A DNA stretch of 64,000 bases from Trichosphaerium sp. ATCC 40318 (GCA_038496445.1 JALMLS010000299.1:124001-188000), one strand, 5' to 3'; counted from the stretch's first letter, positions 9,702 through 48,306 are shown. Notes: a model not told the origin generated them from the letters alone. Translations and numbers: made by a program.

Positions 9702-10325
9702 CTAGTTCTCTAGTTGCTTTAGACTAAGCAAACAATTTTTGAGTGATCTTTTTGATACGTCAGCACCAGGAAACAGCTGTTGAATATGGTCGTATCCAGG
9801 ATAAACACCTTCTTCAGCTAGAGACTTAACAATGGATGCTACAACGAATTGTTTTCTTCTCGCGAAGCGTTGTCGTTGTGCAAGAGATGACTTTTTTGTT
9901 GAAGACCTGAATTTTTTTACGCCATTTTTTTCAGACAGTTGGCTTCTGAAGACTTGTTCCCATTTTTTTTTCGCTTTTAATTCAATAGGAAGTTGCCTAC
10001 TACCCTCATAATATTTACCAAGCGCTTCTTCAATGTCTCGTAGACCTTGATTAAACCATATTTCATCCTCACACAAGTCGTCAAAGGACTGAGCTTGGTA
10101 ATGTATTTTCTTGTATGAAGATGAGTCAGAACGGTATAGATTGTACTCTGGTTCATCAGATATCATTCCTGATTGGGCAATTACACCACAAGATGTGCAT
10201 ACGAGTTCAGCACTTCGAGTTTGAGTGAAGTCTTTACCATCACATTGTGCGCAAGTTCTTGCATTGCGAAGGCTGTTGCGCTTCATCATTTGCTCTAACT
10301 CAATCTGTGTTTTAACAAGAGACAT
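9702..10325 (-). CDS. Intronless, truncated TFIIB-like protein (zinc ribbon + one degenerate cyclin repeat)
   Basis: CAQC...LVCTSCGVIAQSGMISDEPEY matches the TFIIB zinc ribbon; RRKQFVVASIVKSL resembles a cyclin-fold helix; probable ATG at 10325. Confidence 0.7.
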   Translation of the reverse strand: MSLVKTQIELEQMMKRNSLRNARTCAQCDGKDFTQTRSAELVCTSCGVIAQSGMISDEPEYNLYRSDSSSYKKIHYQAQSFDDLCEDEIWFNQGLRDIEEALGKYYEGSRQLPIELKAKKKWEQVFRSQLSEKNGVKKFRSSTKKSSLAQRQRFARRKQFVVASIVKSLAEEGVYPGYDHIQQLFPGADVSKRSLKNCLLSLKQLEN

Positions 10326-10694
10326 GGTGTTATTGAATTTATTTAAGGCTTCTATTAGAAGTTTTTTGGTTGTGAAAATCGAAATTTTAACTTTGTTTGA
10401 TACAAAACGAAAGAAAAAAATTGTGGTTTTGGACATTCTTTTAGTAATATGTTGCAAGCGTGCAAACAACAGAAATGTAGCCTCACATTGGTCGAAACGT
10501 GAATAATGTAAAACAATTACATGAAACTAACTCATTCAACGAAAAATAGTGCACTATTTATCAATATTATTTTTCATTAACTTTTCTGACGGAGAAAAAA
10601 TCTATTGTAGACAATAACTGCTTTTTTTTTTTACATAATTTGTACATTTCTTTTTACCATTAAAACTACCATTACCATGGTACTGGCATCAACT

Positions 10695-13600
10695 TTACTT
10701 TCTAGGTGTATCCCAGTCTGAGCCAGTTCCTGTAACAAGAGGTACCATTGCTAGAAGAATACGTGTTAGGCTTGGAAAGTTTCAAAAAAAAAAAGGAAAA
10801 TTAAAGTACGCACGTCCAAGCTGTGACCCGCCCTGTTGTTTAGCGTAATCAGCAAATCCAGAATACTGGTTACCAAAACCATTATTGCCGGTAAGGTTAC
10901 TACCAAAAGTGGGACCGTTATTTATTGTACCAGCCATTTGTTGTGCATAGTTTGACGCTTGTGTTTGAGATCCAAAAGCACCTGGTTGTCCAAATACAGG
11001 ATCACCAGTTGGATTATTTTGTTGGCCACCTTGTTGGTTAAAACCGTTTCCTTGATTTGGAAAGCCGCCCATATTATTTGAAGGAGCATTTCCGAATGCA
11101 GCGTTGTTCTGAGGTGCTGAGGCAAATGCATTACTGCCTCCCCACCCTTCAGTGCTACCTCCTTGTTGTTGTTGTTGTCCCCATCCGCTGTTATTATTAC
11201 CAAATCCTTGATTGTTATTATTACCAAAGCCTTGATTGTTTTGGCTGGCGTTGTTGAATCCTTGATTGTTATTATTACCGAAACCTTGGTTGTTTTGACT
11301 ACCATTATTCGGGAATCCTTGATTGTTGTTACCAAATCCTTGATTGTTATTATTACCGAATCCTTGATTGTTTTGACCGGCATTGTTATTGAAACCTTGG
11401 GTGTTATTATTACCAAAACCTTGGTTGTTATTTTGACCGCCATTGTTATTGAAACCTTGGTTGTTTTGACCGGCATTATTAAAGCCTGGGTTGTTGTTTT
11501 GACCGCCATTGTTAAAGCCTTGGTTGTTGTTTTGACCACCATTGTTACCAAAACCGGTATTACCGAATCCTCCACCAGTGTTGTTTGTGTTTCCAAAACC
11601 TCCTTGTTGTTGTTGGTTATTTCCAACTCCGCCTTGAGCATTGTACGTCTAAAAAGTCATTGTAAGTATCTACAAGAAAATTATATTTCATTGTACTCCA
11701 TCTGCTGCGTCCTCGTTGTCCGAACTGTGACCTTCAGAAACTGTATCGTCATCAGAAAATTCGCCTACTACATCTGACCCATCGCTTGCACTGAGCGTCG
11801 GTGGCTATTAACAATATATAAGATATTAACACTATGAGGAGTGCGTGTACCTGATACGGTTTTTGTGCTAAAGCTGGATCTGTACCGGATTTAGTGGCTA
11901 CAGGTGGAGCAGTAAAGCCACCACCCACTCCTTGAACTTTCTTAGCAGCTGGGGCACTTGGTGCTGTACTTGGAGAAGCAGTTGGAGATGCAGTTGGAAC
12001 TATAGGTTTAGGTACAACAATCTGCGTGCCAGTTCCGCCAGAGTTTGCGGAAAGATTAAACCCAGTGCTAAGTCCAGTACCAAATCCACCAAATCCAGTT
12101 TTTGGAGCTGTGGTGGCAGGTTTAGGATCTTGTTTCAACAAGGATTTGCGTTTTGGTGCTACCCCTGGGGTTGTAGTTCCAAGTGAAAGACCTCCCAAAG
12201 TAGAACCAGGCGCAGTAGCAGGTACTGTCATAGGTGTAAAAGCAGGTGCTGCTGAAGGCGCAGTGGCAGGTACTGTTGAAGGTGCAGCAGCAGGTACTGT
12301 CGAAGGTGCGGCAGAAGATGTAGTCGTACCACCTAGCGAAAGACCAAAACCAGTAGTAGGTGCTGTAGCACTAGTTGTTCCACCAAGCGAAAGACCTCCA
12401 AAACCAGTGGTAGGCACTGTTGAAGGACCTGTAGAAGATGTTGCAGGTACAGTCGTACCACCAAGCGAAAGACCAAAACCAGTAGTAGGTGCTGTAGCAC
12501 TAGTTGTTCCGCCAAGCGAAAGACCAAAACCAGTAGTAGGCGCTGTAGCACTAGTTGTACCGCCAAGTGAAAGACCAAAACCAGTAGTAGGTGCTGTCGA
12601 AGGTGCGGCAGAAGATGTAGTCGTACCACCTAGCGAAAGACCAAAACCAGTAGTAGGTGCTGTTGAAGGAGCTGCGGCAGGTGCGTTACTTGTAGAGCCA
12701 ACGCCAAATCCTGTGTTATGTGTTGTAGTGGATGGTAGAGTTAAGCCACCACCTGCCTTTGGAACAGTAGTACTTGTAAATCCAAACCCGCCACCAGTGT
12801 TACTAAAATCTATCTTAGGTAATGGCAAGCTGCTTTTTTCTGGTGTTTTAGTAGCAGATGGTGCCACTGCTGTATTGGTTTGTGTAGTTTTTTGCTTTGC
12901 GAGATCAGCCTGTGCGAGTTTAGTCCCCCAATTATCAGTTGTTTTAAGTGGCGTAGAAGCCCCAAATCCAGCTCCCCAAGTAGTCGTAGGTTGTGACGCC
13001 CAAGCAAAACCACCATTACTCTGAGCAGGTTTTGATGCAGGCACAGGTTTAGGTGTAATTGCAATACCAACTGCGTCAGGTTGTGTAGGTTTTGCAGGAG
13101 AAGGTTCAAAGGTATATGAAGTTTTAGGTCGAGGTGTTGTGATAGATGGTGGATCTAAAGAAGCTTCTTCGTCTGAGGAGAAGTCTTCAAAACTATAACT
13201 ATGCGCTTTCTTCTTACTAGGTGTCTCTAATGTACAACAATAAGTAAACTCCAATTCCCAAATTATCAAAGAAACAAAAACCATGACGTACTCTTTTCGT
13301 AAAGTGCATGCTGTCCGGAACTCCTGAGGGAAAGTAAGTTAGCACGAACTGTTTTTATTAAGAAATTTCTACGTACTGTGAAGGTTTGCCTGGAGTTTGT
13401 TGACTTTTATAGCTTGCTTGTAGCCTATTTGTACTTTTCGCCAGCTGCTGCAATTGCAAGTGCCACGAGTTCAGTGATTTCTCTGGAACTCGCTTATACT
13501 TCTTACGAGGTGTTCTAGGTGAAGCCCCACTGCCAGGTCCAGGACCATTGCCACCGCCATTGCCACCGCTACCATAACTGCCACGGGAAGCACTTCTAGG

Positions 13601-16600
13601 ACTTGCTCTAGGACGCATAGGTGATGGAGTCAGCGGCGAAACTTTTGGCGCAAGTGGGCTGTTCGCTGTAGAAACGGTTCTGAGCCTAATGCTTTATAGT
13701 TAGCGTCAATACCAGTGTTAGAGTTACGAACATAGAGCCAAGTTGTAATCGGGAAATACGTTCATTAAGCTGATAAACACGCTCTCTGCTGGCCAAAGTT
13801 GACTTAACGTGGTTGCATAGAATGCGATAAATAACGTTAAAAGAAGGTTCTCTACTTTGTCGACTATGAAGAGGGTGAGAAAAAACCTCGAAAAGAGAAC
13901 ATCGCTTAGGTGTTGCGTACATTGCTTGTCGGTTCTTTAGAAGCGAGTTTGTTTGTACACGTAAACTGTTTATAGAACCTTCAATATTGGCGACTTTGGT
14001 CATAATGCTATCACGCATTATCCGTGCCTCAACATCCAAAGGCAATTGTTCCATGGCATGATGAAGATGAGGACTTTGTTTAGCTATAATGATATTCCGT
14101 ATTCCTTCAGCCTATAGTCGTTAGTGATGGGTCTCTGTAAGTATATTATAGCATACCTGGGCATAACCGCCAAGAGTTTTCTCGCTAGCAGTGCTGATTT
14201 CTTGCAATTGCTTGTCAATAGTTACATTTGTTTTTATGCCCTTCAAGTGGTCGATAATTTGTACAAGCTCTTCAATATCACTTTTGTAAAACGGTCGCGG
14301 TGGACTCAAAGCGTTAGCAGTACTTTCTAAAGCAATGTAAACAAGCATACGATTAATAGGAAATGTGGACTTACTATCAAATTGTGAAAAGATCATTTTG
14401 TCAAAATGCTCCTGTAGTGCCTTTTGTTCAGCCATAATCATGTCAAACGCTTCAATAATCTTTTCGACCTCTGTACAAATGTTAGAATTGCAGTAAAATA
14501 TAGTTCATACTTCTAACTGTCAAGTCTTTGGGTGTTTGTGCAGGAGATGGGGGGTTGCCGCCCTGAGGACCACTACCACTAGGAGGACCACTACCACCGG
14601 GAGGACCACTTCCACCAGGACCACTTCCACCAGAAGGTGGAGGTGGAGGAAAACTACTGGCTGGTTGGCCAGTATTGGCTGGAGGTACATTAACAGCTGG
14701 TTGATTGGTACCACCGCTGGCTGGAGGGGCATTGCCGGCTGGAGATACATTAGCGGCTGGTTGGTTGGTACCACCGCTGGCTGGAGGGGCATTGCTAGCT
14801 GGAGGTACATTAGCGGCTGGAGGTACATTGGCGGCTGGTTGCTTGGTAGGATCTGACTTTTGTGAAGGATTACCTGTGGCGGTTGTACCAGCTGCTGGCT
14901 TTTGTGGAAATGGTTGCGATACAGCTGGAAAAAGACTAGTAGTGCTAGGCGCAAAGGCAGTCCCAGTGCTAGGCGCAAAAGAAAAGCCAGTAGCTTTATC
15001 TGCCGGCTTTTGTGCAACTGGTTGTGATGCGGTTGGTGTGGGACTAGTAGTGGCGGGAGCAAAAGCACTAGTGTTAGATTTGTCCGCTGGTGTTTTCGGT
15101 TGTGAGATGACAGGTGTAAAACCACTAGTTTTGGGAGCCGGTGAGCCAGTAGCTTGGATTTTCTTTTGCTTGGGTGGTGTGCCCAGGCTCGAAAGAATTT
15201 GTGCTGCATCAAAGTCGCTATTGCCAGAACTACCATCAGCTTTTCCTTTGTTTTGAGCTGTGTCAGCTGTTGCTTTAGAGTCCGCGCTATCGTTTTTCTG
15301 TACACCAGCAATAGGAGAGTTGGTAGAATTCTTACCTTTGTCAGATTGGTCATTCTGAGGAAAGGTTAATACAAAACTTGACTAGACTTTTGTACGGTTA
15401 AAGCTCCTGGTTTTGGAGCTGCAGCACTCTTGGAATCGCCAGGTGTTGGTTTTTCTTTACCTGTAGTGCCTTTTGCTTGTGTAGGATCAGGTTTAGCTGC
15501 AGTCGGCTTAGGTTTCACAGGGGTGGGTGGTTTATTCTATACGTGAGGTTATATACTGATATTTAGTATGTTTTTGTTGTAATACCAATGCAAGAGTTGC
15601 TGTCAAGCGAAGTTTTCCAGACTTTGCGTTAGGGATGGGAATCCTTTCAATTGTTAGTTTGAAAAAAGAAAAAAAAAGACATCAAAGTACCATGTTCCGT
15701 CGTCTCCCTTTGTATCTTCACCTATAGCGCTCAGTGGAAGTTCAATACCGTCCCCTATAGGATCCGCTACTGACAGCTATTCACATAAGATTGAGCCAAC
15801 AAATAAAAAACCGTACTTTATCTTCATCGTATACTGCCAGGCGAACATAACTGTCTGGAGATTCCACACTAAATGTCATTGTTTCTTCCCAAACTGGGTC
15901 CTTCCTTTTTTGCTTCGTGAGGTTCTTTCTCTGCGTGTCAACTCTTATTGCTACAAAAGGATCACATCCTCCTAATAGATCCATACTGGGTAGGTCAATA
16001 CATTCAATACCTTGGCGTTGTCAGCGAAGAAAAAAATTTATCTGTATCTTCATACGCGTAATTGTCAACACCCCATATGGTTGTTTCTTCTCAGGTTTGG
16101 CTGGTTTCGTTACTGCAACTGGTTTGTTGTCTGTGAGATCAGCGAGTGCTTTCATATTAACTTTTGAAGGTGGAGGGAGTTTCGACGACTCTCTAATATG
16201 AGAGAGTTTTGGCTTAAACAAAATCACTCAGCAAAAACGAGTTTCAATTACAAAACGTACAAAATGTGCTGGTCGGGTCACACGAGTAATCAAAATTTGT
16301 CCAGTACTGCAATACATCAACAGTGAAGGTGACGCAGGTAGCTTCTCTCCCTCACTCGTCATTCTTTCTTCCATGTCGTTGAGAACCAGTTGCATACCAA
16401 GAATTTCTGGTCTAATACCATCTTCCTCATCAACTTAATAATTCGTTAACATCAATAAATGTCTAACCGTTTTACTCACTAAAAAAATCCACTGCATCTT
16501 CCATCTCTAACAAAACTTCCCTCCAAACATCCTGTTCACCTCTAAATATTCTAATAGTGTCGGAGTCTTCTTCATTTGTAGCCAGTAAAATCAAATTCCT

Positions 16601-17956
16601 AAATCATAAAGGATAAGTTCAAAACAAGCCCAGTTGAAAAAAAAATTTACCATTCACGAATAGAAATTGGGTAATATTGCTTGACAACCTACATACAAAG
16701 TGTCAACATTATATTACGGCACCATAACTTACGTTTACGTGAGCAAAGTCAAGGAACTCTTCATGAAGGTGCTAAAAGAGCATAGTTAATACGTAGATAA
16801 CTGTGATAACAAGAGAGTACTTACACCAGAAACAGTGTTTGGTTTACAAAATATAGCTGTGTTGGATAGAGTAAGATCTGTTTCATCCGCCTTATCAACC
16901 ATAGTATAAAATACCATACACGAGTTTGGACCAATGTATTGGCAATAGTGCGCTACCCGAAAAGTGAGTACAAAACCAAAAGGGATTTAATAAATACCGT
17001 ATCCGGTTAGATATTGATCATCTAGTGAATTTTTTTCCCAATAGTCCTCTCCTAACAACGGAAACTCGTGTATGTCATCACCGTTAAAATTTATTATTCT
17101 CAGTGCGCCTGAGGGATCTAAGAAGCATATTTCGTCACTACCGGACTTTGTCAGTAATGGTTCATTTCAACTGCACACGGTACGTACATCACAGGATCAA
17201 AATCAGCAGAAACTACATTTTCAACGAGCAACTGTACAAAAAAGTTAGCATAGTTTCTTGAATGTCAAAAAAAACCACTACGTACTGCATCTGTATTATA
17301 ACTACAAAAGAGTATCATTTTTTGAGTATGTGTCACTACCAAAAAAATATCGGCGTTTATAAGCTGTGGACACCATTTAAAATCAACAATGTTGCCCTCA
17401 TCGACATCTTCTACGCGGAATGGAGCATCCTATTGCCTTTCTTAAGTTTGACAAGTAAAATTACGGTTAGTTACCACAGATTTAGGTGCTAGCAATGCTG
17501 GAATGTCAAAAAATTTGATTGCTGAAGATGTAACTACAGCCAAAACAGTCTCATAAGGCGACAAGTAGACGCCAAAGACGTAATCTTTGGACGACAGCTA
17601 TTTAAACGTTAGTTATTTACCAAGTACATTTCTATCGCGTACAACTTGCTTAGGCGTCTTATTGAGGTCAGATAATTGCCCACACAGAATACCTGTTATA
17701 TTTATCAGTCCTGTCAAGTTTTTCTCAATATAAACGTACACGGAACCCCGCTCATATCTACATTAACATAAAACACTAAATCATAGGCGGAAGACGCGGC
17801 AACGAAACTACCGCGTTTTTTGCTCAGCTGACAAGCTACACAGCGTTAACGAAGAGTGCCATTTGTACTACGACCTTGAAGAGGCGGCAAGCGTGTAATT
17901 TCTTCGTTACGAGGAGGCCTAATAAACTTGAGATCTTTGCCTCCGCCTGGTTCCAT
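10695..17956 (-). CDS. NUP214: Nucleoporin Nup214/Nup159-like: beta-propeller, inserted C2 domain, coiled coil, FG repeats
   Basis: Propeller motifs VYLSPYETVLAVV..IKFFDIPALL and LPASPSLLMYCSTGQI; coiled coil MEQLPLDVEARIMRDSI / PSFNVIYRILCNH; TTGFGLSLGG and GFGNNNNQ repeats; ends DWDTPRK*. Exons checked around C2 and the C-terminal half join via GT-AG introns. Confidence 0.85.
11180..11620 (-). repeat. Coding tandem FG repeats (QGFGNNNN / GFNNNAGQNN)
   Basis: Repeated ccttgattgttattattacc-type units on + strand within the Nup214 tail. Confidence 0.85.
12170..12665 (-). repeat. Coding tandem FG repeats (APTTGFGLSLGGTT)
   Basis: About six copies of gcgaaagaccaaaaccagtagtagg-like units in ORF 11752..13284. 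Confidence 0.9.
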
Positions 17957-18042
17957 GGCGGCCACCGTTAAAATGTTATGCAAATAAAATCAAAGTTTTC
18001 GCAAACGCATTCAAATGAATTCAAAAAAAAAAAACCGCCACA

Positions 18043-18986
18043 ATGAACAAGCTATTTGATGAATTTAACGCCAGTATTGGCATGTTAATTACTTTTCACT
18101 GCTTTCGCTAATTCAAATAAACACAGACGCTCAAAACAAAATTAGGGAAGAGATTAGCGTCAAAACAAAGGAATTAGATCAAGTGGTTCGTGCGTTGCAC
18201 TCAACGTTTCAGGTAGGACAATAATTTATCTTGTCATCACCAGCAAACTTACAGAGCATAGGGTATTCACACAGACATCACCAAAGGAGCGGATATCTTT
18301 TCGACATGTAAAAAACAATTCCCTTTGGTAAAAGAAAAGCTTGTAGCGCTCCAAGAGGTTGTACCAGCACAATTTTACTACAAATACTCTCAAATGTGGC
18401 AATACAAAATAACTTCCTTTGTGTGCGTTTACGCTCTCATTGGGTGGCTAGATAGCGGTACGTAACGTCTAGTTAGTTTATTATTGAGTTAATTATCAGG
18501 TGCCTTGGTTACATTGCAACAAGTCGAGGACGAACTTGGATGTACGTATTTTTACCACCTGGTTAATATCTGAAATACAATAGTACCAGGTAAAAAGGCT
18601 GGCCCAAATGCTTTTGCAGTTGAAATTGGTAAGTGACATTTAGTGACATGTCATTTCTCACATTGCATAGAGGACTACTTGTACGGTCTAGCGTCTGTGC
18701 CATCAGAATTAGTAAGGTTCGCTACGAACAGTGTCATCAATGGAGATTTCAAAAAACCAAGAGAGATTGCTCAATTTGTAACACAGTTACACGCTGGGTT
18801 TGGATTGTTAAACTTGAAGAATGACGGTCTTAGAAAAAAATTCGATTCTATGAAGTATCCTTTTTTGGGTTTAAAAAATCCGTAATTTCGCCATTTATCT
18901 TTCCTTCACTACACAGATATGACATTAAAAAAATAGAAGACATAATATACGACCTAAAAATACGTGGTTTGGTGTCAAAGGATTGA
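18043..18986 (+). CDS. TSN: Translin (C3PO subunit)
   Basis: KIREEI, EDYLYGLASVPSELVRFATNSVINGDF, GFGLLNLKNDGLRKKFDSMK|YDIKKIEDIIYDLKIRG. Confidence 0.93.
18080..18126 (+). other. Probable GC-AG intron in translin
   Basis: G|GCATGT...ACACAG gives FDEFNASIDAQNKIREE, preserving the spacing of the animal translin N-terminus; the upstream GT alternative is also in frame but removes 2 aa. Confidence 0.6.
18855..18916 (+). other. U12-type (minor spliceosome) GT-AG intron
   Basis: 5' site GTATCCTTT, branch-like TTCCTTCAC at 18901-18909; removal restores MK|YD. Confidence 0.85.
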
Positions 18987-19247
18987 TAACTTCTATTTTA
19001 CGTAAATATTAATTACTGCAAACCGAAAAAGTAAAGTTGTACTGGCAAAAGGTACTGGCGGTCGACGAATTAAAACAACGGCTTCTACATATATTGTACT
19101 AGTTTATACGCATGTAAAACTGCCAACCAATGTTGTTTTAACTTCAAAAAAAAAATCGTAAGACTTAACGTTATTGTTGTTCGCTACAACTAAACCAAAA
19201 GGCCGCCTGAACCACAACAACAACTACAAAAAAAAAACGGGCGTGTT

Positions 19248-20961
19248 ATGAATGGTTCGTTACAAGCCCAAATACAAGGCTTTAAAAAAAACAAGCTGTC
19301 CAATGCCGACACGGTTGATAAAAGCGTTGCTACAGGCGCTGGAAAAGGTGCGATCTTACCTGATCGTTCAACAGCTCACCAAACTAGTTTTAAGTGGCAA
19401 AGACGCGAAGAAAAAGGCTGGAAGCCCACCTGCGAGACCTCCAGCAGTATCTGCGTCTCGCCCCAATGGACGCAGCTCTCATGCACCCAAAATGGCAATG
19501 CCTGGTAGTACGTTCGCAGTAAAACCATATCGCGCTCGAAAATAGCTAGTCTACGCCATTTTTGGGTTTTTTTTTGGTTTTTTGCTTCGCCTGTATAATA
19601 TGCGCCTTATTTGCATTACACACGCGATTTTGGCGACTCACAATTGTTGTGTAGTGTAAATTCTTTTCTATACTAGACAGAAAACTTATTAACTCTTTTA
19701 ATTAGTGGGCCGACCACCCCCACGCCCTGTAGTACCTCCACAAGCGGCTATGCCATCTCCATATGCGACACCAACTTCGTCAAGCAACGGATCCTCAAAT
19801 AGTAATTACTCCTACTCAACATAAAAATCCAAACTGACTTTATGCAAAGGATGGAATTTTCACCAGCCTTCAGAATTTCCAAGCGCACCTACATTTTCCG
19901 GAAGGACAAAAGTATACCCTTCAGGATCTTCAAGGTTAGATTATAAATAGTTGCCATGTACTGACAACCACACAGAGGAAGTAGTTTTCCATCTCTCAAA
20001 CCTCAAGCTGGTGTCAATGGAGGAGGGATTGTGTCAACTCATGCTCCAGCACCGCCACCTGCACCTTCACCTTCACCTCCGCCTCCAGCTCCTAGCAAAA
20101 TTAGTCTAACCGTACGTGATGACTTGATGTTTGCACAAAAGTAATATATAAAACAGGGTTCACCACGACCGGCACCGGCACGTCCACCAACAACAGCGCC
20201 ACGCATGCCATCACCAACACCAATGGCTCATCCTCCTCCTATGCCACCAAAAACAGCACCTCGTTTGTCTAGCCCAGCTCTACCAAATGCACGACATCCT
20301 CCAGCTCCACCAAAGAAACCAGCATCACGCAAAGCTCCACCACCACGGCCTGCAGGGCGACCATCGTTTTCACCAATGCCTGCTAAAAAGGCGCCACCAG
20401 CACCGTATGGTAAGGCACCACCAGCGCCGTACGGTAAGGCACCACCAGCACCGTATGGTAAGGCACCACCAGCGCCGTATGGTAAGGCACCTCCAGCACC
20501 ATATGGTAAGGCACCTTCAAAGCGACCTGCACCTGCACGCCCAGGTAAACGCAATGCGCCACCTACACCAGGCAAAAGACCTGGCTTTTCTCCTAAAAAG
20601 TGCGATAAACATTATAATCACGTGATTGTTAACAAATAATTATTTTAGAATGCCAAGGTTGCCACCTAAGCGATCACCTGGTCCACTAAAACGGAGGGCA
20701 CCTAAAAAAAAGCGTCCTAATTTTGGACCAAAGAAAAGGTTTGGAAAGATGAGGCCTAAAGGTAAAGGTAAATTTGGCAAACGCCCACTTAAGTTTGCTC
20801 CAAAACGGAGATTTCCAAAAGGAGGTGTTAAAAAGAGAATGGTTCCACCAAAGAAACGAGGAAAATTACCTCCTTCCCGCCCACCTAAAAAAGGATTTGG
20901 TGCTCCAAAAGGAGGGTTTGGTAAGCGTAGACCTGTACCTAAAGTACCAAAAAAATGGTAA
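19248..20961 (+). CDS. WIP/verprolin-like actin regulator with extended Pro/Lys-rich tail
   Basis: N-terminal WH2-like LQAQIQGFKKNKLSNADTVDKS; WASP-binding-like WNFHQPSEFPSAPTFSGRTKVYPSG; polyproline tracts. Confidence 0.75.
20388..20507 (+). repeat. 24-nt coding tandem repeat x5 (KAPPAPYG)
   Basis: aaggc(a/g)cc(a/t)ccagc(a/g)cc(g/a)ta(t/c)ggt repeated five times. Confidence 0.95.
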
Positions 20962-21239: not shown

Positions 21240-22181
21240 ATGGAAGGTACAATTTAATAAAACACGTGGTTACTCAGATTTACGAAAGGGCATGACATTC
21301 CTTCTACTACACTTCTACAGCTCCCTAATGAGACATTAACAGCCATCCTAAGGATTTTACCTCGAGGATGGCGTATTAAATCATCGCTAGTGTCTCACCT
21401 ATTCAACGACATTATCAAACAAAATATTGGTATTTCCTCGATTACAGTGAACAATCCTTCAGACTTTCTTGTTTTGAAATCAAACCCACTTCTCAGAAAT
21501 ACAACCATCAAATTTAACACTCACCATAACCTAACAGATGAAAATTTTGAATGTCTCAGGGGTGTACACACTCTTGTACTTTTCCCTAGATATTCACCCG
21601 TAACACCAGAAGGATACAAGCATATAGTCGGTGTTCATGACCTCCACTTACATTACACTGCGCCAGATGAAGTGGTCAAATTATTTGCAGGTATTCATAG
21701 TATGAACCTTTCATATAATCACGTGGTAACAGATAGTGGCCTCGCATGTCTTGCTGGTGTTCATACTATAAATTTATCAGGTTGTTCTTCCATTACAGCA
21801 CGTGGAATCAAAGCAATTAATGGTGCTCACTCGATTACACTTGGTGCTCACGCAACAGATGAGTGGCTTGAAGAAGTAAAAAATGTACATACAATTAAAA
21901 TCGTTCCAGTAAGTCCAAATCAATGCCGTATTACAAATGCAGGTATCAGAGCTTTGTGTAATGTCAAGCACTTGGAACTGGTCTTTTCTAGTAGGGTTAT
22001 TACTGATTTGGGAATGAAACACTTGACTAGCGTGCAATCCCTCACTGTATGCCACTTTTCTTCTATTACAAACGACTTTCTCAAGTATCTTACTTGTCTT
22101 AAATCTATAAAGACATATAAAACTCGGATAACAAAAGATGCAGTAGTTGCCTTGGGTATTACTTGGAAACCTATGTTATGA
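21240..22181 (+). CDS. F-box/LRR protein
   Basis: ATGGAAG, short intron, then F-box LLQLPNETLTAILRIL..SSLVSHLF and LRRs GVHTINLSGCSSIT, VTDSGLACL. Confidence 0.85.
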
Positions 22182-40608: not shown

Positions 40609-43600
40609 TCAAGGTCTTTGGATTGTTAGGGAGAACAGTTGACCCACTGTATTTGCAGCAATGATATGCTTCTTTCCAGAGACAGTGGCACTGGCTACGC
40701 TCGTGAGAGGAGCGGAGGTAACGAATTCGCCAGTGGATTTGCGCGTTCTAGTGTTCCAAGCGCGAAGTGTTGTACCACCAACAGATAGGAGCTCTGTGTT
40801 GACAGCAGGCATAAATGTGATGCCAGATAAGCGACCTTGGCCAAGCAACGTGATTGAGCTGTTGTTTGGTGAATTAACGGAACTCACACGAATAGATCCG
40901 TCTTCGGAGCACGAGGCGAGAGAGTTGCTATCAGGACTGAAGGCGAGATCGGTGACACAATTCGTGTGAGCAGGGATTTGAAAGGCAAGAACACCGTTTG
41001 ATGGATTCCATAATCTGACTGTATCATCGTATGAGGCCGAAGCGCAGAAGCGGCCATTAGGAGAGAAGCATACCTGAAAAAGAAATTAATTTATGAAAAA
41101 CTTGAAAAGAAGATATTATACACTTACCTTAGTGATCCAGTCAGTGTGTCCAGTCATAACCCTTTGTTTGGATCGCGAACCAACACTCCAAACAATGACC
41201 TGGTTGTCCCAACCACCTGAAATGATCTTGGAGCCAGAGGAATCGAATCCACAACTCCACACAGGGGCATTATGACCTGTGAATGTGGCAACTGCTGTGT
41301 TACCTTGACGAATATCCCACAGTTTCAATAACTTGTTGTCAGCAGCTGTAACAATAAGAGAACCATTTGAAGAGAACTTGGCGTCACGGACTGGGATATT
41401 TTCTCCGTGAGTGAAGGTGCGCATTTTGAGGCCTGTCTCGAGGTTCCAGACGATTGCGGTTCCATCATCTGAGGCTGTGACTGCTTTGCCTGAAGAGGTG
41501 ATGTCTACGTTATTGACATAACCAGGGTGTCCTTCCAAGGTTTCAAGGACTACTTCTTCTTCTGGCTCGTCGACAGTAAGGGAAAAGCTGCTGGTAAAGC
41601 CATAACCGCCTACATCGTCATCGTCGTCCTTGTCATCACCAATACCGGCATTCCACATTTTCATTGTACCGTCCTTGCTCGCAGATACAATTTGCTTGGT
41701 GACTGGATCGAAATTTGCAGATAGGACAGAGTCTGCGTGACCAGTAAGAGTAGCAACCTCAGTAGCTGCCAAAGGATTCCAGATCTAAACAATGACGTTA
41801 ATACCAAACACTTCGCTGATGTATTATTATTACCTTTAATGTGTGGTCATCAGAAACGGAGGCAATACGTTTGCCATCTGGAGAGAATGCAACGCCGTTG
41901 ATGCGCATCTCGTGTCCTTTGAGAGTCGTAATTTCAGTGCAGGATTTAGCGTCCCAGATTTTAAGGGATCCATCATACGACGCAGATACAATATGTTCGC
42001 CGGTTGGAGAGAATCGGCAAAATACAACAGCGCTCTCGTGACCAGCCATAGTCGCGATTTCCTTGGTCTTGCGCATGTTCCACAATTTGAGGTTGTAATC
42101 CCATGAAGAGGATATGACGCGGTTGCTGTCGTTAGACATGTGACAGCAATTGATCCAGTCCATGTGAGCATTGATGACTTTTAGGCAATGTCCATTTCTA
42201 GCGTCCCATAGTCTTAACGTTTTATCTCTAGAAGCGGAGAGAATGTGCTTGCCTGTTAAAAGGGTAAGTAACTATTTTAGAAGGGGACAAGAAATAAACA
42301 AAAGAAGTATTATTCTTAGCGTACCGTTTGGTGCGAATGACACAGAGCGAACAACTGAGTCGTGACCAACAAGTTCTTCTTCGCATGCACTTTCACCAGT
42401 TGCAGCATTCCATACCCGAATGCTGAAGTCATCAGAGCCGGTGGCAAGGCGGTAGTCACCAGAGATTGGTGCCCATGAAAGTGAGTTTACAGCGCTGCGG
42501 TGACCCTTTAGTTCTCGCTCAACTGCACCGCTAGAAGCGTTCCAGATCACAACGAGTCCATCTTCAGAGCAAGATGCAACATAGCGGCCGTCGTACGAGA
42601 ATTCAGCGTAGGTAATTGGGCGATTGTGTGCTGTGGCAGACCAGAGTGGTTCTTCTGGTTTCTCCAAGTCCCACACAGATACAATGCAATCGGAGGATCC
42701 GGTAACAACGAGATTGCCTTGAGAAGGGTTGAAGCACACGCAGTTGAAGTAACCTTCCTTGATTTTTATGGTTTGGATCTCTTTACCCAAGTTAGCATTC
42801 CAGACTTTGAGGGTGCTGTCGTCTGATGCGGATACTACTTGCTGGCCATCTGCAGAGTATGTGACGCAGTTGATAGGCTTTGCGTGAGCGCTGAGCTTGC
42901 TGATAACTTTTCCGGCTGCGGCGTCCCAAAGGATCATTTTGTTGTCTAAGCCGCCAGATACGATGTGCTTTCCTGAAGGGGACATGGAAAGGGAACGGAT
43001 GGATCCTTCGTGACCAGAAAGGGTGCGCAATAAAGCACCGTCTTCAACATTGAAAATTGTGATATCTCCATCCCAGGAGGCTGCAATGACCTGTTTGTCA
43101 TCTGGGGAGAATGTACAACTGTTGAGAGGACGAGATTTTGGGAAATTGAACCATTTTCGTAAAGGTTTGCCTTCGATAGCATCCCAGTACTTAAGGTGGC
43201 AATCCCATGAAGCAGAAAGTAGGTATCTGCCATCGTTGGAATAAGCAACATCATTGACTCTCCTGTTGTGACCCTTGAGAGTAGTGATTTCGGCTTTGAC
43301 GTAGAGGTCCCAAAGCTTGATGGTCTTATCCCAAGATCCTGATACGAGTTGGCGACTGTCGTAAGAGAAAAGAAGAACTGGGATTGCGTTGGTGTGTCCA
43401 GTCAAAGTGCATATTTCGGCACCTAAATTGTACAAATAAGTATCTGGCAATAATATAGTAAAAAATTAAAGAGAAGCAAAACGTACCAGTGTGAGCATCG
43501 TAAATCTTGATGCTGCAATCCTTTAGAGCGCAAGCAATCATAGTTCCGTCAGGCGATACTGTAGTAGCGGTAACTGCGCCTTGGAAACCAGAGAATGTCA

Positions 43601-46600
43601 TCTTGCAACTGTTATGCTCTTGAGGTTTGTTGAGCCATTTGAACCATTGGCCATTGTGTAGCTCCTCATTCCAAAGCTCGGAGGCTTCTTTAGATGGTGC
43701 GGAGTCGTCAGGTTGGTTAATAGCCTGTTGGAATACGAGAGCTGGGCTTTTATGAAGGGTAAAGGCGTTTGACTGGAAGAATCTCATGAATTCTTTTACT
43801 TCCTTGCGTTTGTCGTATGAGCCTTGTTCTTTTGATACTGCGCGGTTGTAATCTGCGAGAAGATCGAAGCTCATGCCAAGGCTTACCTTTAACTCAACAA
43901 AGGACAAGTTAGTGAGTAAGGCGCTGAAGAGGTCGTTGCGTTCAGCCAAGCATGCGTGGTATACGACTTCAGATACGGCGTGAGTGTTTGGAGAAGGAAG
44001 GAGCTTTTTGTTCTCGTCTACCACTAGTGTGTTGTAGTGTGTTGCAAGCTTAACGTGGATCTTCGTTACGTTCTTGCGGCGTGTTCGTGATGTGTAACGC
44101 TTTTGCACGGCCTTTGTGAGCTCGTTATGGAAGAAGTTGAGCGTGCAGTCTGAAACAGGGCCAGTTTCTTTTAAGAATGAACCGAGAGCTTGGTAGAGGG
44201 TCAACCATTTTTCGGTAGTGAAACCAGTGATGTTATCGAGGAGTAGGCGTTCTAAGGTCTCCTTTGGAATACCACCGCGAGAGCAAGCAATGGCAGCGAG
44301 AGTGAGCTCAACAACTGGTTTGGTGTGATCGGTTTCGAGACGGCGCAGTACTTGGTCGAATAATTGATGGATCTTACCACCCATATCACGGATTGCTTTG
44401 GTTACTAGTTCGTATACACCAAAGATTCTCAGTTCTTCGCAAGCAACCTTTACGAAAATGTTAACAAAGGGACGAAGGAATACTAACACAAAAATCGTAC
44501 CATAAGATAAAGAGGTTTATACGCCTCTGGTTTGCGAAGTAGTACTCTCATTTGGTTGTTCATTGGACGTTCATCTAGTTTCTTGTGGTAGTCCCATAGG
44601 GTTTCACGGACAATTTCGGTTCTGGTCTTTACGTCAAGTTTTGTCATTTGAACATCAATAACCTTTGAGTGGCGTCTCTTGAATGCACTTAGAGGGGCGC
44701 CGTTGTTGAAGGAGAGCATAAACTGGCAAGGAGCGGATTTTGGAAGCCAGTCTAGAGAGTGAGCATTTTCTATGCTATCATTGAGTTGATCAATACCATC
44801 GAGTACTACGATCAATTTGCCTTGGAAAGAGGCCTCTTCGAGAATGGTAGGGAAGATCTTTACCAAATCGCGGTAGCCAGCAGGAATCTCAATGTCAAGG
44901 CTAAACGCAGCACAAATTTCGCGACAAAGGCGATCCAATGTTCTGGTAATGTTGGTGGATCCTGGACTAGATCCTAATGAAGATAGTGAGTAAATGAAGT
45001 AATGTTTGCAAAAGAGTTTACGTACCAATGTAGTGAGTTAGCACGAAAGTGTTTGGGTGCGTCTCAGCAAATCGTTTTGAGAAAGTAGCCAATAGTGCTG
45101 ATTTTCCATCACCAGGTTCGCCTGTAACTGCCAATAGTTTGGACTTATCGTTATTTGCGAATTTTTCGAGGCTGGCGAGTTCTGATTTGCGTCCAATAAA
45201 ACGACGGGATCTGTCGTATGCGTACATCTGATGGTAGTTTCTCTCCTTCTCTAGAGCATCCTTTGTATCTGGAGCAGCCGGGTATTGAGTGTCAATGGCC
45301 GACCACAACCAGTTGAACACATTTTGGCCAAAGACTTCGAGACCAGTTACAACGGGTTTGCCTTCAACTTCTCCGCCCCATGTAGCTGGGTAGTTATCAA
45401 GCACGTTCAAACCGCTAGAGCGAATGCGGTTCTTGAGATCAGTGAGCTTCTTGTGACTTTCGGCGTTGGTATCTTTGAAGTCGCGTGCGTATTTTTCAGG
45501 TACTTTAATGTCATCATTACGCAAGAAGAAACATGCACCGCTGGCCTTGCTAGGATCTTGAAGAGCGGCAAGTTGCATTTCGAGTTCGGTGATGGAGCGA
45601 CCAGCAGGGTAATTTTTGACCCATTCGAAGCGTGGATGATCTGGCAGGCCTTCGTATTCTTTTGGAGCCCAACCGTATCGGTTACCCAACATACCGATAA
45701 AGAATGGTCGACAGCGCTCAACTTCGTCGAGACAGAGCTCGAGGGACTTTCCGAGCTGGGATTCTTCTTCAGTGACACCCCAACGTAGATCAACTTCGAC
45801 TAGGTTGATTCTTCTTTGCATGCATCGTTGTTTGAGTTCAGGGAAGATTTTACGGGTGAGGAAATCACGCTCACCATGCATATCACGGAAGGTGGAAGAG
45901 ATAAACACACGGACTTCGCGCCATGGTTTGCCAATGGTAATGTTAGGATAGTTTACAGGAGATGGGACTGCTTCACCCATTTTCTCCAACCATGTCCACC
46001 ATGGAGAGGACTGTAAAAGAGGGTTAGTGCGACGAATAATTTGAGAAAAAACAAGAAAATAAAACCGTACCTCAATTTCGCGTTTGACGTTCAGGTTCTT
46101 TACGCCCTTAGCTTCGTCGATGTTTTCAACGTATTGGAGTTGGTTATCTCCTTTTTCAGCGATAAAGCGAAGAATTTGGTCGCTGAAACCGGTAACGAGG
46201 AGATCGTTTGGACTTTGTTCGTCTTGATCAAGGCTTGGTCTACCTTTACCGCTGAGGTCCACGCTTACGAAAAGAAGGTCTTCGTTTACTTCTTGACGGT
46301 ACTTCTTGAGTAAGTTGCCCTGTAAAAAAAAACAGTAAGTACTAGTAAAAGATAATTATGAACTTACGAGCTGGGATTGACTGCCATCAGAAGGATTCAT
46401 TGGGGTGTGAGATAGCACAACAATGTTATCAATACGTTTACGTTTCAAAACGAGGTCGCTTAAGTATTGGTAAGGGAATTGACCTTGACGGCTCTGATCA
46501 AGGTTGGTTGCTTGGGCACTGACGAGATTCATATTATCTAGGATGGTTCCTTCCTTGAGTTCTACTGACAAGCCATTAGGATAGGCTGTGCTTGGGGCAC

Positions 46601-48306
46601 TAAACAAATTTATAAGTAAGGATTTGAGGTTATAAAAGTATTGTGGTACCTGAAGATTCTAAAGTCGCAGTCTTCGCACACGTATTTACACATGAGACCA
46701 AGTAAGTAACCAACTTCTTGGATTTTGCGGACGGAATTACCCATGCCACGGGCTCCGGAACAGTCAGCATCGGAACCAGCACCGACGTTGCAAAATACAA
46801 CAGTGGAACCACGAATAGGACTGACATTGTGAACAGTAGCCAACTTGACAGCAGAGTCTAGAGCTGCGCGGTAATTGGCGAATACGTAGTCTGGTGGCAT
46901 ATGGGCAGGGATAATTGGCTTTTTGCGTTGGCGACGTTTCTTGCCATCGTCGGCACCACGTTTGCCGGAATTTTGTTGCTCAATGAGCTGTTTGAAGTGC
47001 GCCAAGTCGCGCGGAATTACTTCGTAAGCCGAAAAGAAGCGGAAGGGGAATTGTCTACTGTTTCGTACAGCAACTTCATTGGAAAGACGATTTTGCGCCC
47101 ACTACCACGTATTAGCACATTTTGAGATGGAGAGGAAATAAAACAAAATTATATACCTTATGGTACTTAGGGTGAACCCCTGCGAATATCAAGTTTCGCA
47201 AGTTACGCAACATGGCCATGAATGGGAGTTTTTTGTGCTCGATTAATTCTTCCCAAGTGGCTGCTTTGTTTCCCTTTTCGGACAAAAGAGTTTCCCAGGT
47301 TTCAGGAGTTGGAAGCTTCATGCGTTTTCCAGCCAATTCAGGGTCGAAGCGCCCAGGTAGACCTACACGAAAATGTTAACAAACCTACACTTTAAAATCA
47401 GTCAATAGACTTACCCGACATAGCGAATTGCGAGTCGTTTTCTGGGTACTTTTTACCCAAGATGCACATGACTGGGAACACTGGAGAGGAGACATGAAGG
47501 TGTCTAATCATTTGTTTGATAGTTAACATGGGCTTTTGAGGTTTCGTGAAACGATCAGGGTTCTTTTGCTTTTCTTCACGCATTTTTTTCAACTGTGATA
47601 AAAAAGTCAGTTGAAAAGTTTTTTTTTGCTGGCAAAGTTTTTCAGAACGTACCTTGCGCTTTACGCTGCGCTCCTTGTTGTATTTACCCAATTGATAGGC
47701 GTCGAAGCTAGGGAACTTATCGCACATAGCTTTACGTAGGCATGTTGGTACTGCCTTGCCGCTTAGAGCCTTATCAGGCAAAATGTTGTAGGTGGCAGCA
47801 ACATCAAGCCAATCGGATGGTAACCTTACAATGTGGCACAAATATTTGCGTACGAACGGCTGGCAAGCAGGGATGTTCGCTGCGAGTGCGACAATGTAGT
47901 TGGCGGTTGTTCTAATGTTCAAATCGCTTCTAACGTACAAACCCATCTTGAGAACGAACTCTGGGTCATAGAAAGAGATGGTCTTAATCTACAAAAGATA
48001 AATTTAGTTTATTTTTTAGAGCTAAAACAATTATGCTCCACAAAGTGTCTTAAAAAGTACGTACTAGATCGGCGATACGAACAAACACTTCTGCTGTTAC
48101 ATCAAATCTGGGGTTATTGATAAGAGCAGCCGAAACAGTGTTCAAGAGCGCTGTTTTAACTTTACGAAGCTCAGCTGGCGATAGCTGTTGAAAGTTGTCC
48201 TTTAATCTTCAGTTGGGTTAGTATTAGTCTTTTTAGGTTTTACTAGTACGTACCCATGAGCCCCCGATGATTTCGCTGTACCTTTACCGTTATTGCGTCC
48301 AGACAT
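40609..48306 (-). CDS. TEP1: TEP1 (telomerase/vault-associated protein): TROVE-VWA-DUF4062-NACHT-WD40
   Basis: DPEFVLKMGLYVRSDLNIR, FDAYQLGKYN, PETWETLLS..LPFMAMLRNLRN (TROVE); VRVFISSTFRDMHGERD; Walker A GEPGDGKS; Walker B IVVLDGIDQL; long WD40 array. Confidence 0.93.

Follow-up and report, generated by a model that had tools for sequence, protein, structure and literature searches.

Background

Human Nup214 (also known as CAN), yeast Nup159 and fission yeast Nup146 are FG nucleoporins of the cytoplasmic filaments of the nuclear pore, the heads of which dock the mRNA-export helicase Dbp5/DDX19. In Nup214, a head, a spacer, a helical stalk and an FG tail follow one another in a chain of around 2,000 residues. 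The head is an N-terminal seven-bladed beta-propeller, with PDB entries 2OIT and 1XIP as the reference structures for Nup214/Nup159. We know of no C2 domain in either human Nup214 or yeast Nup159. Other soluble pore proteins touch the pore or nuclear membrane, through the ALPS motif of Nup133 and the amphipathic helices of Nup53/Nup35, Nup153 and Nup1/Nup60; these motifs are all short amphipathic helices that work independently of calcium, and are found in scaffold or basket proteins. To our knowledge, none of them is a C2 domain and none belongs to the Nup214 complex. The action of calcium on nuclear pores has been disputed for decades, and we are aware of no pore component with an obvious calcium sensor having featured in that debate. 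A known precedent for a C2 module that responds to the condition of the nuclear envelope is provided by cPLA2: a rise in Ca2+ brings its C2 domain onto nuclear and ER membranes, and membrane tension lowers the calcium threshold (PMC12716060).

The window, the whole 64,000 nt stretch of Trichosphaerium sp. ATCC 40318 DNA analysed here, contains a gene whose product resembles Nup214, Nup159 and Nup146 in its layout: some 400 N-terminal residues that are folded, then a region of disorder, 200-300 residues of helical stalk and an extended FG-repeat domain (Table 1). Its length is close to the 2,090 residues of human Nup214. In contrast to what is known of Nup214 and Nup159, a C2 domain is inserted between head and stalk, together with a basic linker of its own. 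A literature search gave no description of a Nup214 or Nup159 with a C2 domain, hence this architecture appears, as had been supposed when it was first noticed, to be undescribed.

Table 1. Position of the Nup214-like gene in the window and of the parts of its predicted product
Feature	Position	Strand	Details
Nup214-like gene with C2 domain	10782..17956	minus	24 exons; ~2,033 residues
Head, residues 1-396 (exons 1-12)	16261..17956	minus	folded, non-repetitive; putative seven-bladed propeller
Lys/Pro-rich linker, residues 397-443	16072..16212	minus	19% K, 17% P; shares an exon with the first C2 strand
Linker and C2 cassette (exons 13-16)	15586..16212	minus	495 coding nt, 165 codons
C2 domain, residues 444-561	15586..16071	minus	four exons; Pfam and PDB matches
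D459	15981-15979	minus	aligned to synaptotagmin-3 aspartate (HMMER)
D465	15963-15961	minus	aligned to synaptotagmin-3 aspartate (HMMER)
D510	15828-15826	minus	aligned to synaptotagmin-3 aspartate (HMMER)
D512	15822-15820	minus	aligned to synaptotagmin-3 aspartate (HMMER)
D518 (ADPIG)	15764-15762	minus	by spacing rather than alignment: six residues past D512
Disordered spacer, residues 562-889	14511..15536	minus	Pro/Ser/Thr/Lys-rich
Helical region, residues 890-1120, candidate coiled-coil stalk	13732..14470	minus	AlphaFold2
FG-repeat domains, residues 1401-2033	10782..12798	minus	composition

Gene structure

Three-frame reading of positions 18000-9000 gave short open stretches, separated by gaps of 38-67 nt with GT..AG ends. 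In the resulting minus strand model, the frame is open throughout from the ATG at 17956-17954 to the stop codon, the end of which is at 10782. Ten of the introns are supported by RNA and a further 13 are predicted (GT..AG, 38-67 nt); most are 38-54 nt in size, with GTA(C/A/T) donors and (A/T/C)AG acceptors. A gene model built with the fewest introns was rejected, having chosen over-long introns that contradict the RNA joints, and a curated intron list was used in its place. The 5' end of the gene is fixed by a divergent gene on the opposite strand, which begins around 90 nt upstream, as measured from start codon to start codon. This neighbour belongs to the translin family (18044-18990 on the plus strand; Pfam Translin, E 3e-23 on one exon). 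Locally, the model is uncertain at 13200-13380 on the minus strand, over which RNA coverage is absent: the simplest join there leaves an odd hydrophobic stretch, which probably hides either a second short intron, with a GTACGT donor at 13291, or a single intron of 152 nt.

Splicing of the transcript

RNA contigs from two runs of one study were placed on positions 13500-18000, with the FG-repeat exons lying outside this stretch, and had 95-100% identity to the window and a depth of 1-9. Their joints skip exactly the GT..AG introns of the minus strand, hence they represent spliced RNA from the same organism. The introns seen directly as joints are 17874-17836, 16824-16772, 16732-16689 and 16650-16599 in the head, and 16055-16011, 15690-15644 and 15585-15537 in the C2 region. 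Three others were identified from the loose ends of contigs, these being 16997-16953 (22 letters), 16479-16434 (16 letters) and 16260-16213 (nine letters); the last of these ends, AAAATGTGC, corresponds to 16261-16269 and links the linker exon to the last exon of the head.

One contig of 208 nt contains these nine letters of the last head exon, the linker exon (16212-16056) in full and, from the first exon to encode C2 sequence only, 38 letters. Further contigs span the junction between the third and fourth C2 exons and that between the fourth C2 exon and the linker exon downstream of it; this last joint, 15536/15586, leads from the C2 domain into the downstream spacer and is present in both RNA runs. 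The boundaries between head and linker, linker and C2 domain, successive C2 exons, and C2 domain and downstream linker are therefore all crossed by spliced contigs, and the C2 exons are part of the same transcript as the head, neither forming a separate gene nor being skipped in these contigs. The original prediction had named skipping of the C2 exons, or their assignment to a separate gene, as an outcome that would count against it; every contig that reaches a boundary of the cassette includes the cassette.

Canonical GT-AG introns that keep the frame had also been proposed from the end of the propeller onwards. Those at the C2 boundaries are confirmed by RNA, whereas intron 15816-15777 and the joins to the stalk and FG exons are predicted. 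In the former case, the prediction follows from the GT..AG ends, the frame and the restoration of the C2 consensus across the junction (VYDEDK/LSVADPIG); in the latter, it follows from GT..AG introns of 40-49 nt and the open frame. RNA coverage was absent over intron 15816-15777, from 15460 to 14900, and below 14550, as well as over the helical region, with contigs present at 14558-14890.

Two contigs from one of the two runs (X1) each retain an intron, 17474-17430 and 16650-16599 respectively, in the manner of partly processed RNA; the second of these introns is spliced in a contig from the other run (X2). Relative to the window, the retained copy of 16599-16650 has one substitution and lacks one base, and presumably represents an allele.

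The C2 domain and its calcium site

A C2 domain had been recognised at 15585-16085; its extent is 15586-16071, and all of the peptides then quoted are present. It is encoded by the end of exon 16212-16056, followed by exons 16010-15817, 15776-15691 and 15643-15586. The 64-residue main exon alone scores 52.2 bits (E 7.8e-14) with the Pfam C2 family (PF00168), the cut-off of which is 22, in an alignment spanning profile positions 8-76 of 104, and matches 28 solved C2 sequences in the PDB at E <= 0.001. The best of these are the C2A domains of synaptotagmin-3, -7 and -1, with further matches to Munc13-1 C2B, PKC-gamma, E-Syt2, MCTP2 and small plant C2 proteins (CAR, CAR4), all of which bind lipids in a Ca2+-dependent manner. 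No other C2-like sequence was found in the window by tblastn. A word-index search with the C2 exon returned no candidate relative, and metagenome scans with this exon and with the last head exon returned nothing.

All five of the aspartates that bind Ca2+ in such domains are present, in agreement with the original prediction. Four are paired by HMMER with those of synaptotagmin-3, SMD-LLGGC-DPF aligning to AKD-SNGFS-DPY and VYDED to VYDFD. The fifth, D518, lies beyond a predicted 40 nt intron in the next exon, the 28 residues of which are too few for any match. The resulting spacing of 6 / 2 / 6 is that of D172/D178/D230/D232/D238 in synaptotagmin-1, and five aspartates with canonical spacing are likewise found in the C2A domains of Syt1/3/7, Munc13-1 C2B, PKC-gamma, E-Syt2, MCTP2 and CAR4. 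The leucines following D459 and D512-K513 occupy the positions of M173 and F234, the residues of synaptotagmin that insert into the membrane. Past the first calcium loop there is a basic run, TQRKNLTKQKRK, which coincides in position with the phosphoinositide-binding patch, such that the domain shares both hydrophobic loop tips and a basic stretch past this loop with synaptotagmin-type C2 domains. Lys/Pro-rich linkers flank it on both sides. The leucine loop tips, basic run and linkers fit a C2 domain that docks on membranes and, given all five aspartates, Ca2+ binding by the domain is likely, though not certain.

In two respects the domain departs from the synaptotagmin pattern. Starting with GVLTITRIE and ending with GKLRLTATLAL, its sequence suggests a type-II circular permutation rather than the type I of synaptotagmin. 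Furthermore, synaptotagmin-type C2 domains are hosted by vesicle, ER-contact and kinase proteins, whereas here a single copy lies inside a putative nucleoporin.

Phase-0 introns bound the cassette of linker and C2 domain on both sides. A module of 495 nt between two such introns is both compatible with exon shuffling and skippable in frame. However, there is no compositional sign of a recent arrival, as cassette and head have equal GC3 (0.34 and 0.35, respectively).

The N-terminal head

The placement of the C2 domain, in frame after a folded N-terminal domain and ahead of a tail with disordered, helical and FG-repeat parts, is as originally described; the accompanying identification of the N-terminal domain as a Nup214 propeller found no match to that family in searches with individual exons. 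The head has an ordinary composition, is spread over 12 exons encoding 13-58 residues each and, at 396 residues, is approximately the size of the Nup159 and Nup214 propellers. It was searched by its larger exons, and no nucleoporin family was matched by the exons searched singly, seven against Pfam and six against the PDB, at E values of up to 10. One exon weakly resembles designed propeller blades (8prl, E 0.018), and another has a weak match to Nbas_N in Pfam (E 0.07).

A match to the designed 'Bagel' propeller at E 9.7e-14 was rejected, the score being inflated by eight identical repeats contributing about 7 bits each; an honest figure for the blade match, from chains of one or two blades with 80-85 residues, is E 0.02-0.2. 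Likewise, a likeness between the last head exon and formyl-transferase fragments, returned by a language-model look-alike search, was rejected as chance. Crude statistics of propensity and periodicity failed to distinguish the head from control regions and were set aside. Four short stretches of the head, SFVAASSAYDLVF, FFDI, VDFKWCP and LPASPSLLMYCSTGQIL, resemble LLAVSNKYGLVF, FFDV, IDMKWNP and LPPAPVLMLLSTDGVL of the human Nup214 propeller, with the same order and similar positions in both, a resemblance that we treat as a lead only.

The spacer, candidate stalk and FG repeats

The spacer of around 330 residues includes a few FxF/AFAP motifs and virtually no acidic residues, and contains one predicted intron (15395-15355). 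In the Dictyostelium pore model, the coiled coil of Nup214 corresponds to residues 601-901, hence a long region before the stalk is not unusual in amoebae; the term 'C2 domain' is absent from those Dictyostelium pore texts that were searched for it.

AlphaFold2 models of each candidate stalk exon alone consist entirely of helices, including helices of 40 and 36 residues. Blocks of these models reach a pLDDT of 93, within an overall confidence that is low to moderate (mean pLDDT 51.8 and 67.6). Fold searches starting from the helical model had no informative outcome, and a language-model look-alike search with the helical exon produced no result. A full-library HMMER search with the 130-residue helical exon had a single match, which was rejected as a spurious repeat protein. 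In Nup214/Nup159, the coiled-coil segments bundle with Nup88/Nup82 and Nup62/Nsp1, partners that are not encoded in the window. No Pfam family matches either the helical or the FG parts.

Almost all of the FG dipeptides in the protein (24 of the 26) fall within residues 1401-2033. The tail begins with about seven units of the TGFGLSLGG type, which are followed by a short acidic patch and then by Asn/Gln-rich QGFGNN/QGFNN units. Over its approximately 630 residues it is nearly uncharged, comprising 0-0.3% E and 0.6-0.7% D, and it thus has the length and low charge of a Nup214-type FG-repeat domain. The repeats differ in type, being GFGLSLGG and N/Q-rich GFGNN sequences, whereas the tail of human Nup214 is rich in SxFG and FxFG. 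In the disordered region past the stalk, a KTTQT motif (12877-12894 on the minus strand; residues 1369-1374) fits the consensus for binding of LC8/dynein light chain. Yeast Nup159 carries a row of such motifs; the single copy here lies in a Thr/Gln-rich stretch and may be due to chance.

Identity of the protein

The name of Nup214 is given to this protein because of the order and sizes of its domains and its FG content. We consider it to be an FG nucleoporin of the Nup214/Nup159 type, with a calcium-dependent lipid-binding C2 cassette following its head, with a probability of roughly 55%, and infer a location at the pore. The tie to the family is one of layout, the searches with individual exons having given no sequence match; full-library HMMER, metagenome and word-index searches found no relatives of any part. 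A protein unconnected with the pore might have much the same outline if it were a cytoplasmic scaffold acting in membrane traffic or at the cell cortex, combining a propeller-like head with a C2 membrane anchor, a coiled coil and a prion-like Gly/Asn/Gln/Phe tail that mimics FG repeats. Prion-like tails of low complexity are common in amoebae, the C2 domain is typical of membrane-traffic proteins (synaptotagmins, Munc13, E-Syt and MCTP being among its matches) and no part of the chain matched a nucleoporin family. However, the GFG cores recur at regular spacing in uncharged spacers, which is a hallmark of pore FG domains and unlike plain N/Q runs, whilst the order and sizes of head, stalk and FG tail are those of the Nup214 layout. 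The colinear motif resemblances to human Nup214, although a lead only, point in the same direction, and we regard a scaffold of this kind as unlikely.

That the head and C2 domain belong to one gene, and the stalk and FG repeats to a neighbouring one, with the two artificially joined through predicted introns, appears very improbable. Introns 15395-15355 and 14510-14471, and all those that follow, are indeed predicted, and no RNA contig covers 13500-14550 or 14900-15460. Yet the exons are just 40-49 nt apart, too close together to accommodate a 3' end, an intergenic region and a promoter; the intron ends are canonical (GTA..AG), the frame is open over 6 kb and the junctions have neither a stop codon nor the context of a new ATG. 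In addition, the RNA contigs at 14558-14890 fall in the same exon as the predicted continuation. A reading that accepts a protein of the Nup214 type, but in which the cassette is not a calcium switch, acting instead as a constitutive module for binding membranes or proteins, or being included optionally (for instance, for pore assembly or storage on ER membranes), seems distinctly unlikely. An optional cassette would be consistent with its 495 nt between phase-0 introns, as skipping keeps the frame, with an RNA depth of just 1-4 that leaves room for isoforms, and with the partly spliced contigs of run X1; however, all of the contigs reaching its boundaries include it, with no skipping joint being reported. 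Against a role without calcium, the domain has retained all five ligands, the hydrophobic residues at both loop tips and the basic patch, which argues for selection on calcium-dependent lipid binding.

A possible calcium switch at the pore

If the protein is a Nup214-type nucleoporin with a calcium-dependent C2 cassette, the helical stalk would fix it to the cytoplasmic ring and the FG tail would become part of the transport barrier, leaving the head and adjoining C2 domain to swing on some 330 disordered residues, a tether that should be long enough to reach the membrane from the cytoplasmic ring. A local rise in Ca2+ would cause the C2 domain to bind acidic lipids in either the outer nuclear membrane or the pore membrane, and this docking might then pull the head towards the membrane or hold the filament there. 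Each of these steps goes beyond the intact C2 domain in the transcript and is hypothetical. The original suggestion, of a membrane tether under calcium control that possibly couples Ca2+ to the export of mRNA or the assembly of pores, extrapolates from the behaviour of C2 domains of this type, and its link between calcium and mRNA export is speculation. In its most specific form, this would be an mRNA-export platform with a calcium switch of its own: Ca2+, possibly together with membrane tension as for cPLA2, would make the C2 domain pin the Dbp5-docking head to the outer membrane or the pore membrane, such that the head is moved from the mouth of the channel or locked at it, and either the release of mRNPs or the assembly of filament or pore is gated by calcium. 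We think it quite improbable that the protein works in precisely this manner.

The comparison with cPLA2 has its bounds. It is a soluble enzyme that translocates, whereas the C2 domain described here would already be tethered at the pore. Furthermore, cPLA2 has a preference for phosphatidylcholine and is active mainly at the inner membrane. It is not among the PDB matches of the main C2 exon, and has no particular closeness in sequence to the present domain. Were the favoured reading of the gene correct, a nucleoporin of the cytoplasmic filaments with a built-in and intact C2 domain would represent a pore component with a calcium sensor, and the first membrane contact of the C2 type in the Nup214 complex. 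Should the head prove not to be a Nup214 propeller, the finding would shrink to one more lineage-specific domain fusion.

Other genes in the window

Downstream of the Nup214-like gene, a neighbour on the same strand (9702-10469, minus) has a weak match to a TFIIB-type zinc ribbon, below the cut-off at E 3.5e-4. On the other side, a Pro-rich stretch at 19965-20640 follows a WH2-like motif, LQAQIQGFKKNKL, as read by eye, and an open stretch at 21261-22178 on the plus strand encodes F-box-like and leucine-rich-repeat sequence. A large gene at 41116-47946 on the minus strand encodes TROVE and DUF4062 domains, an ATPase of the AAA_16/NACHT type, an APAF1 helical domain and many WD40 repeats; this predicted layout is that of TEP1, the telomerase/vault-associated protein.
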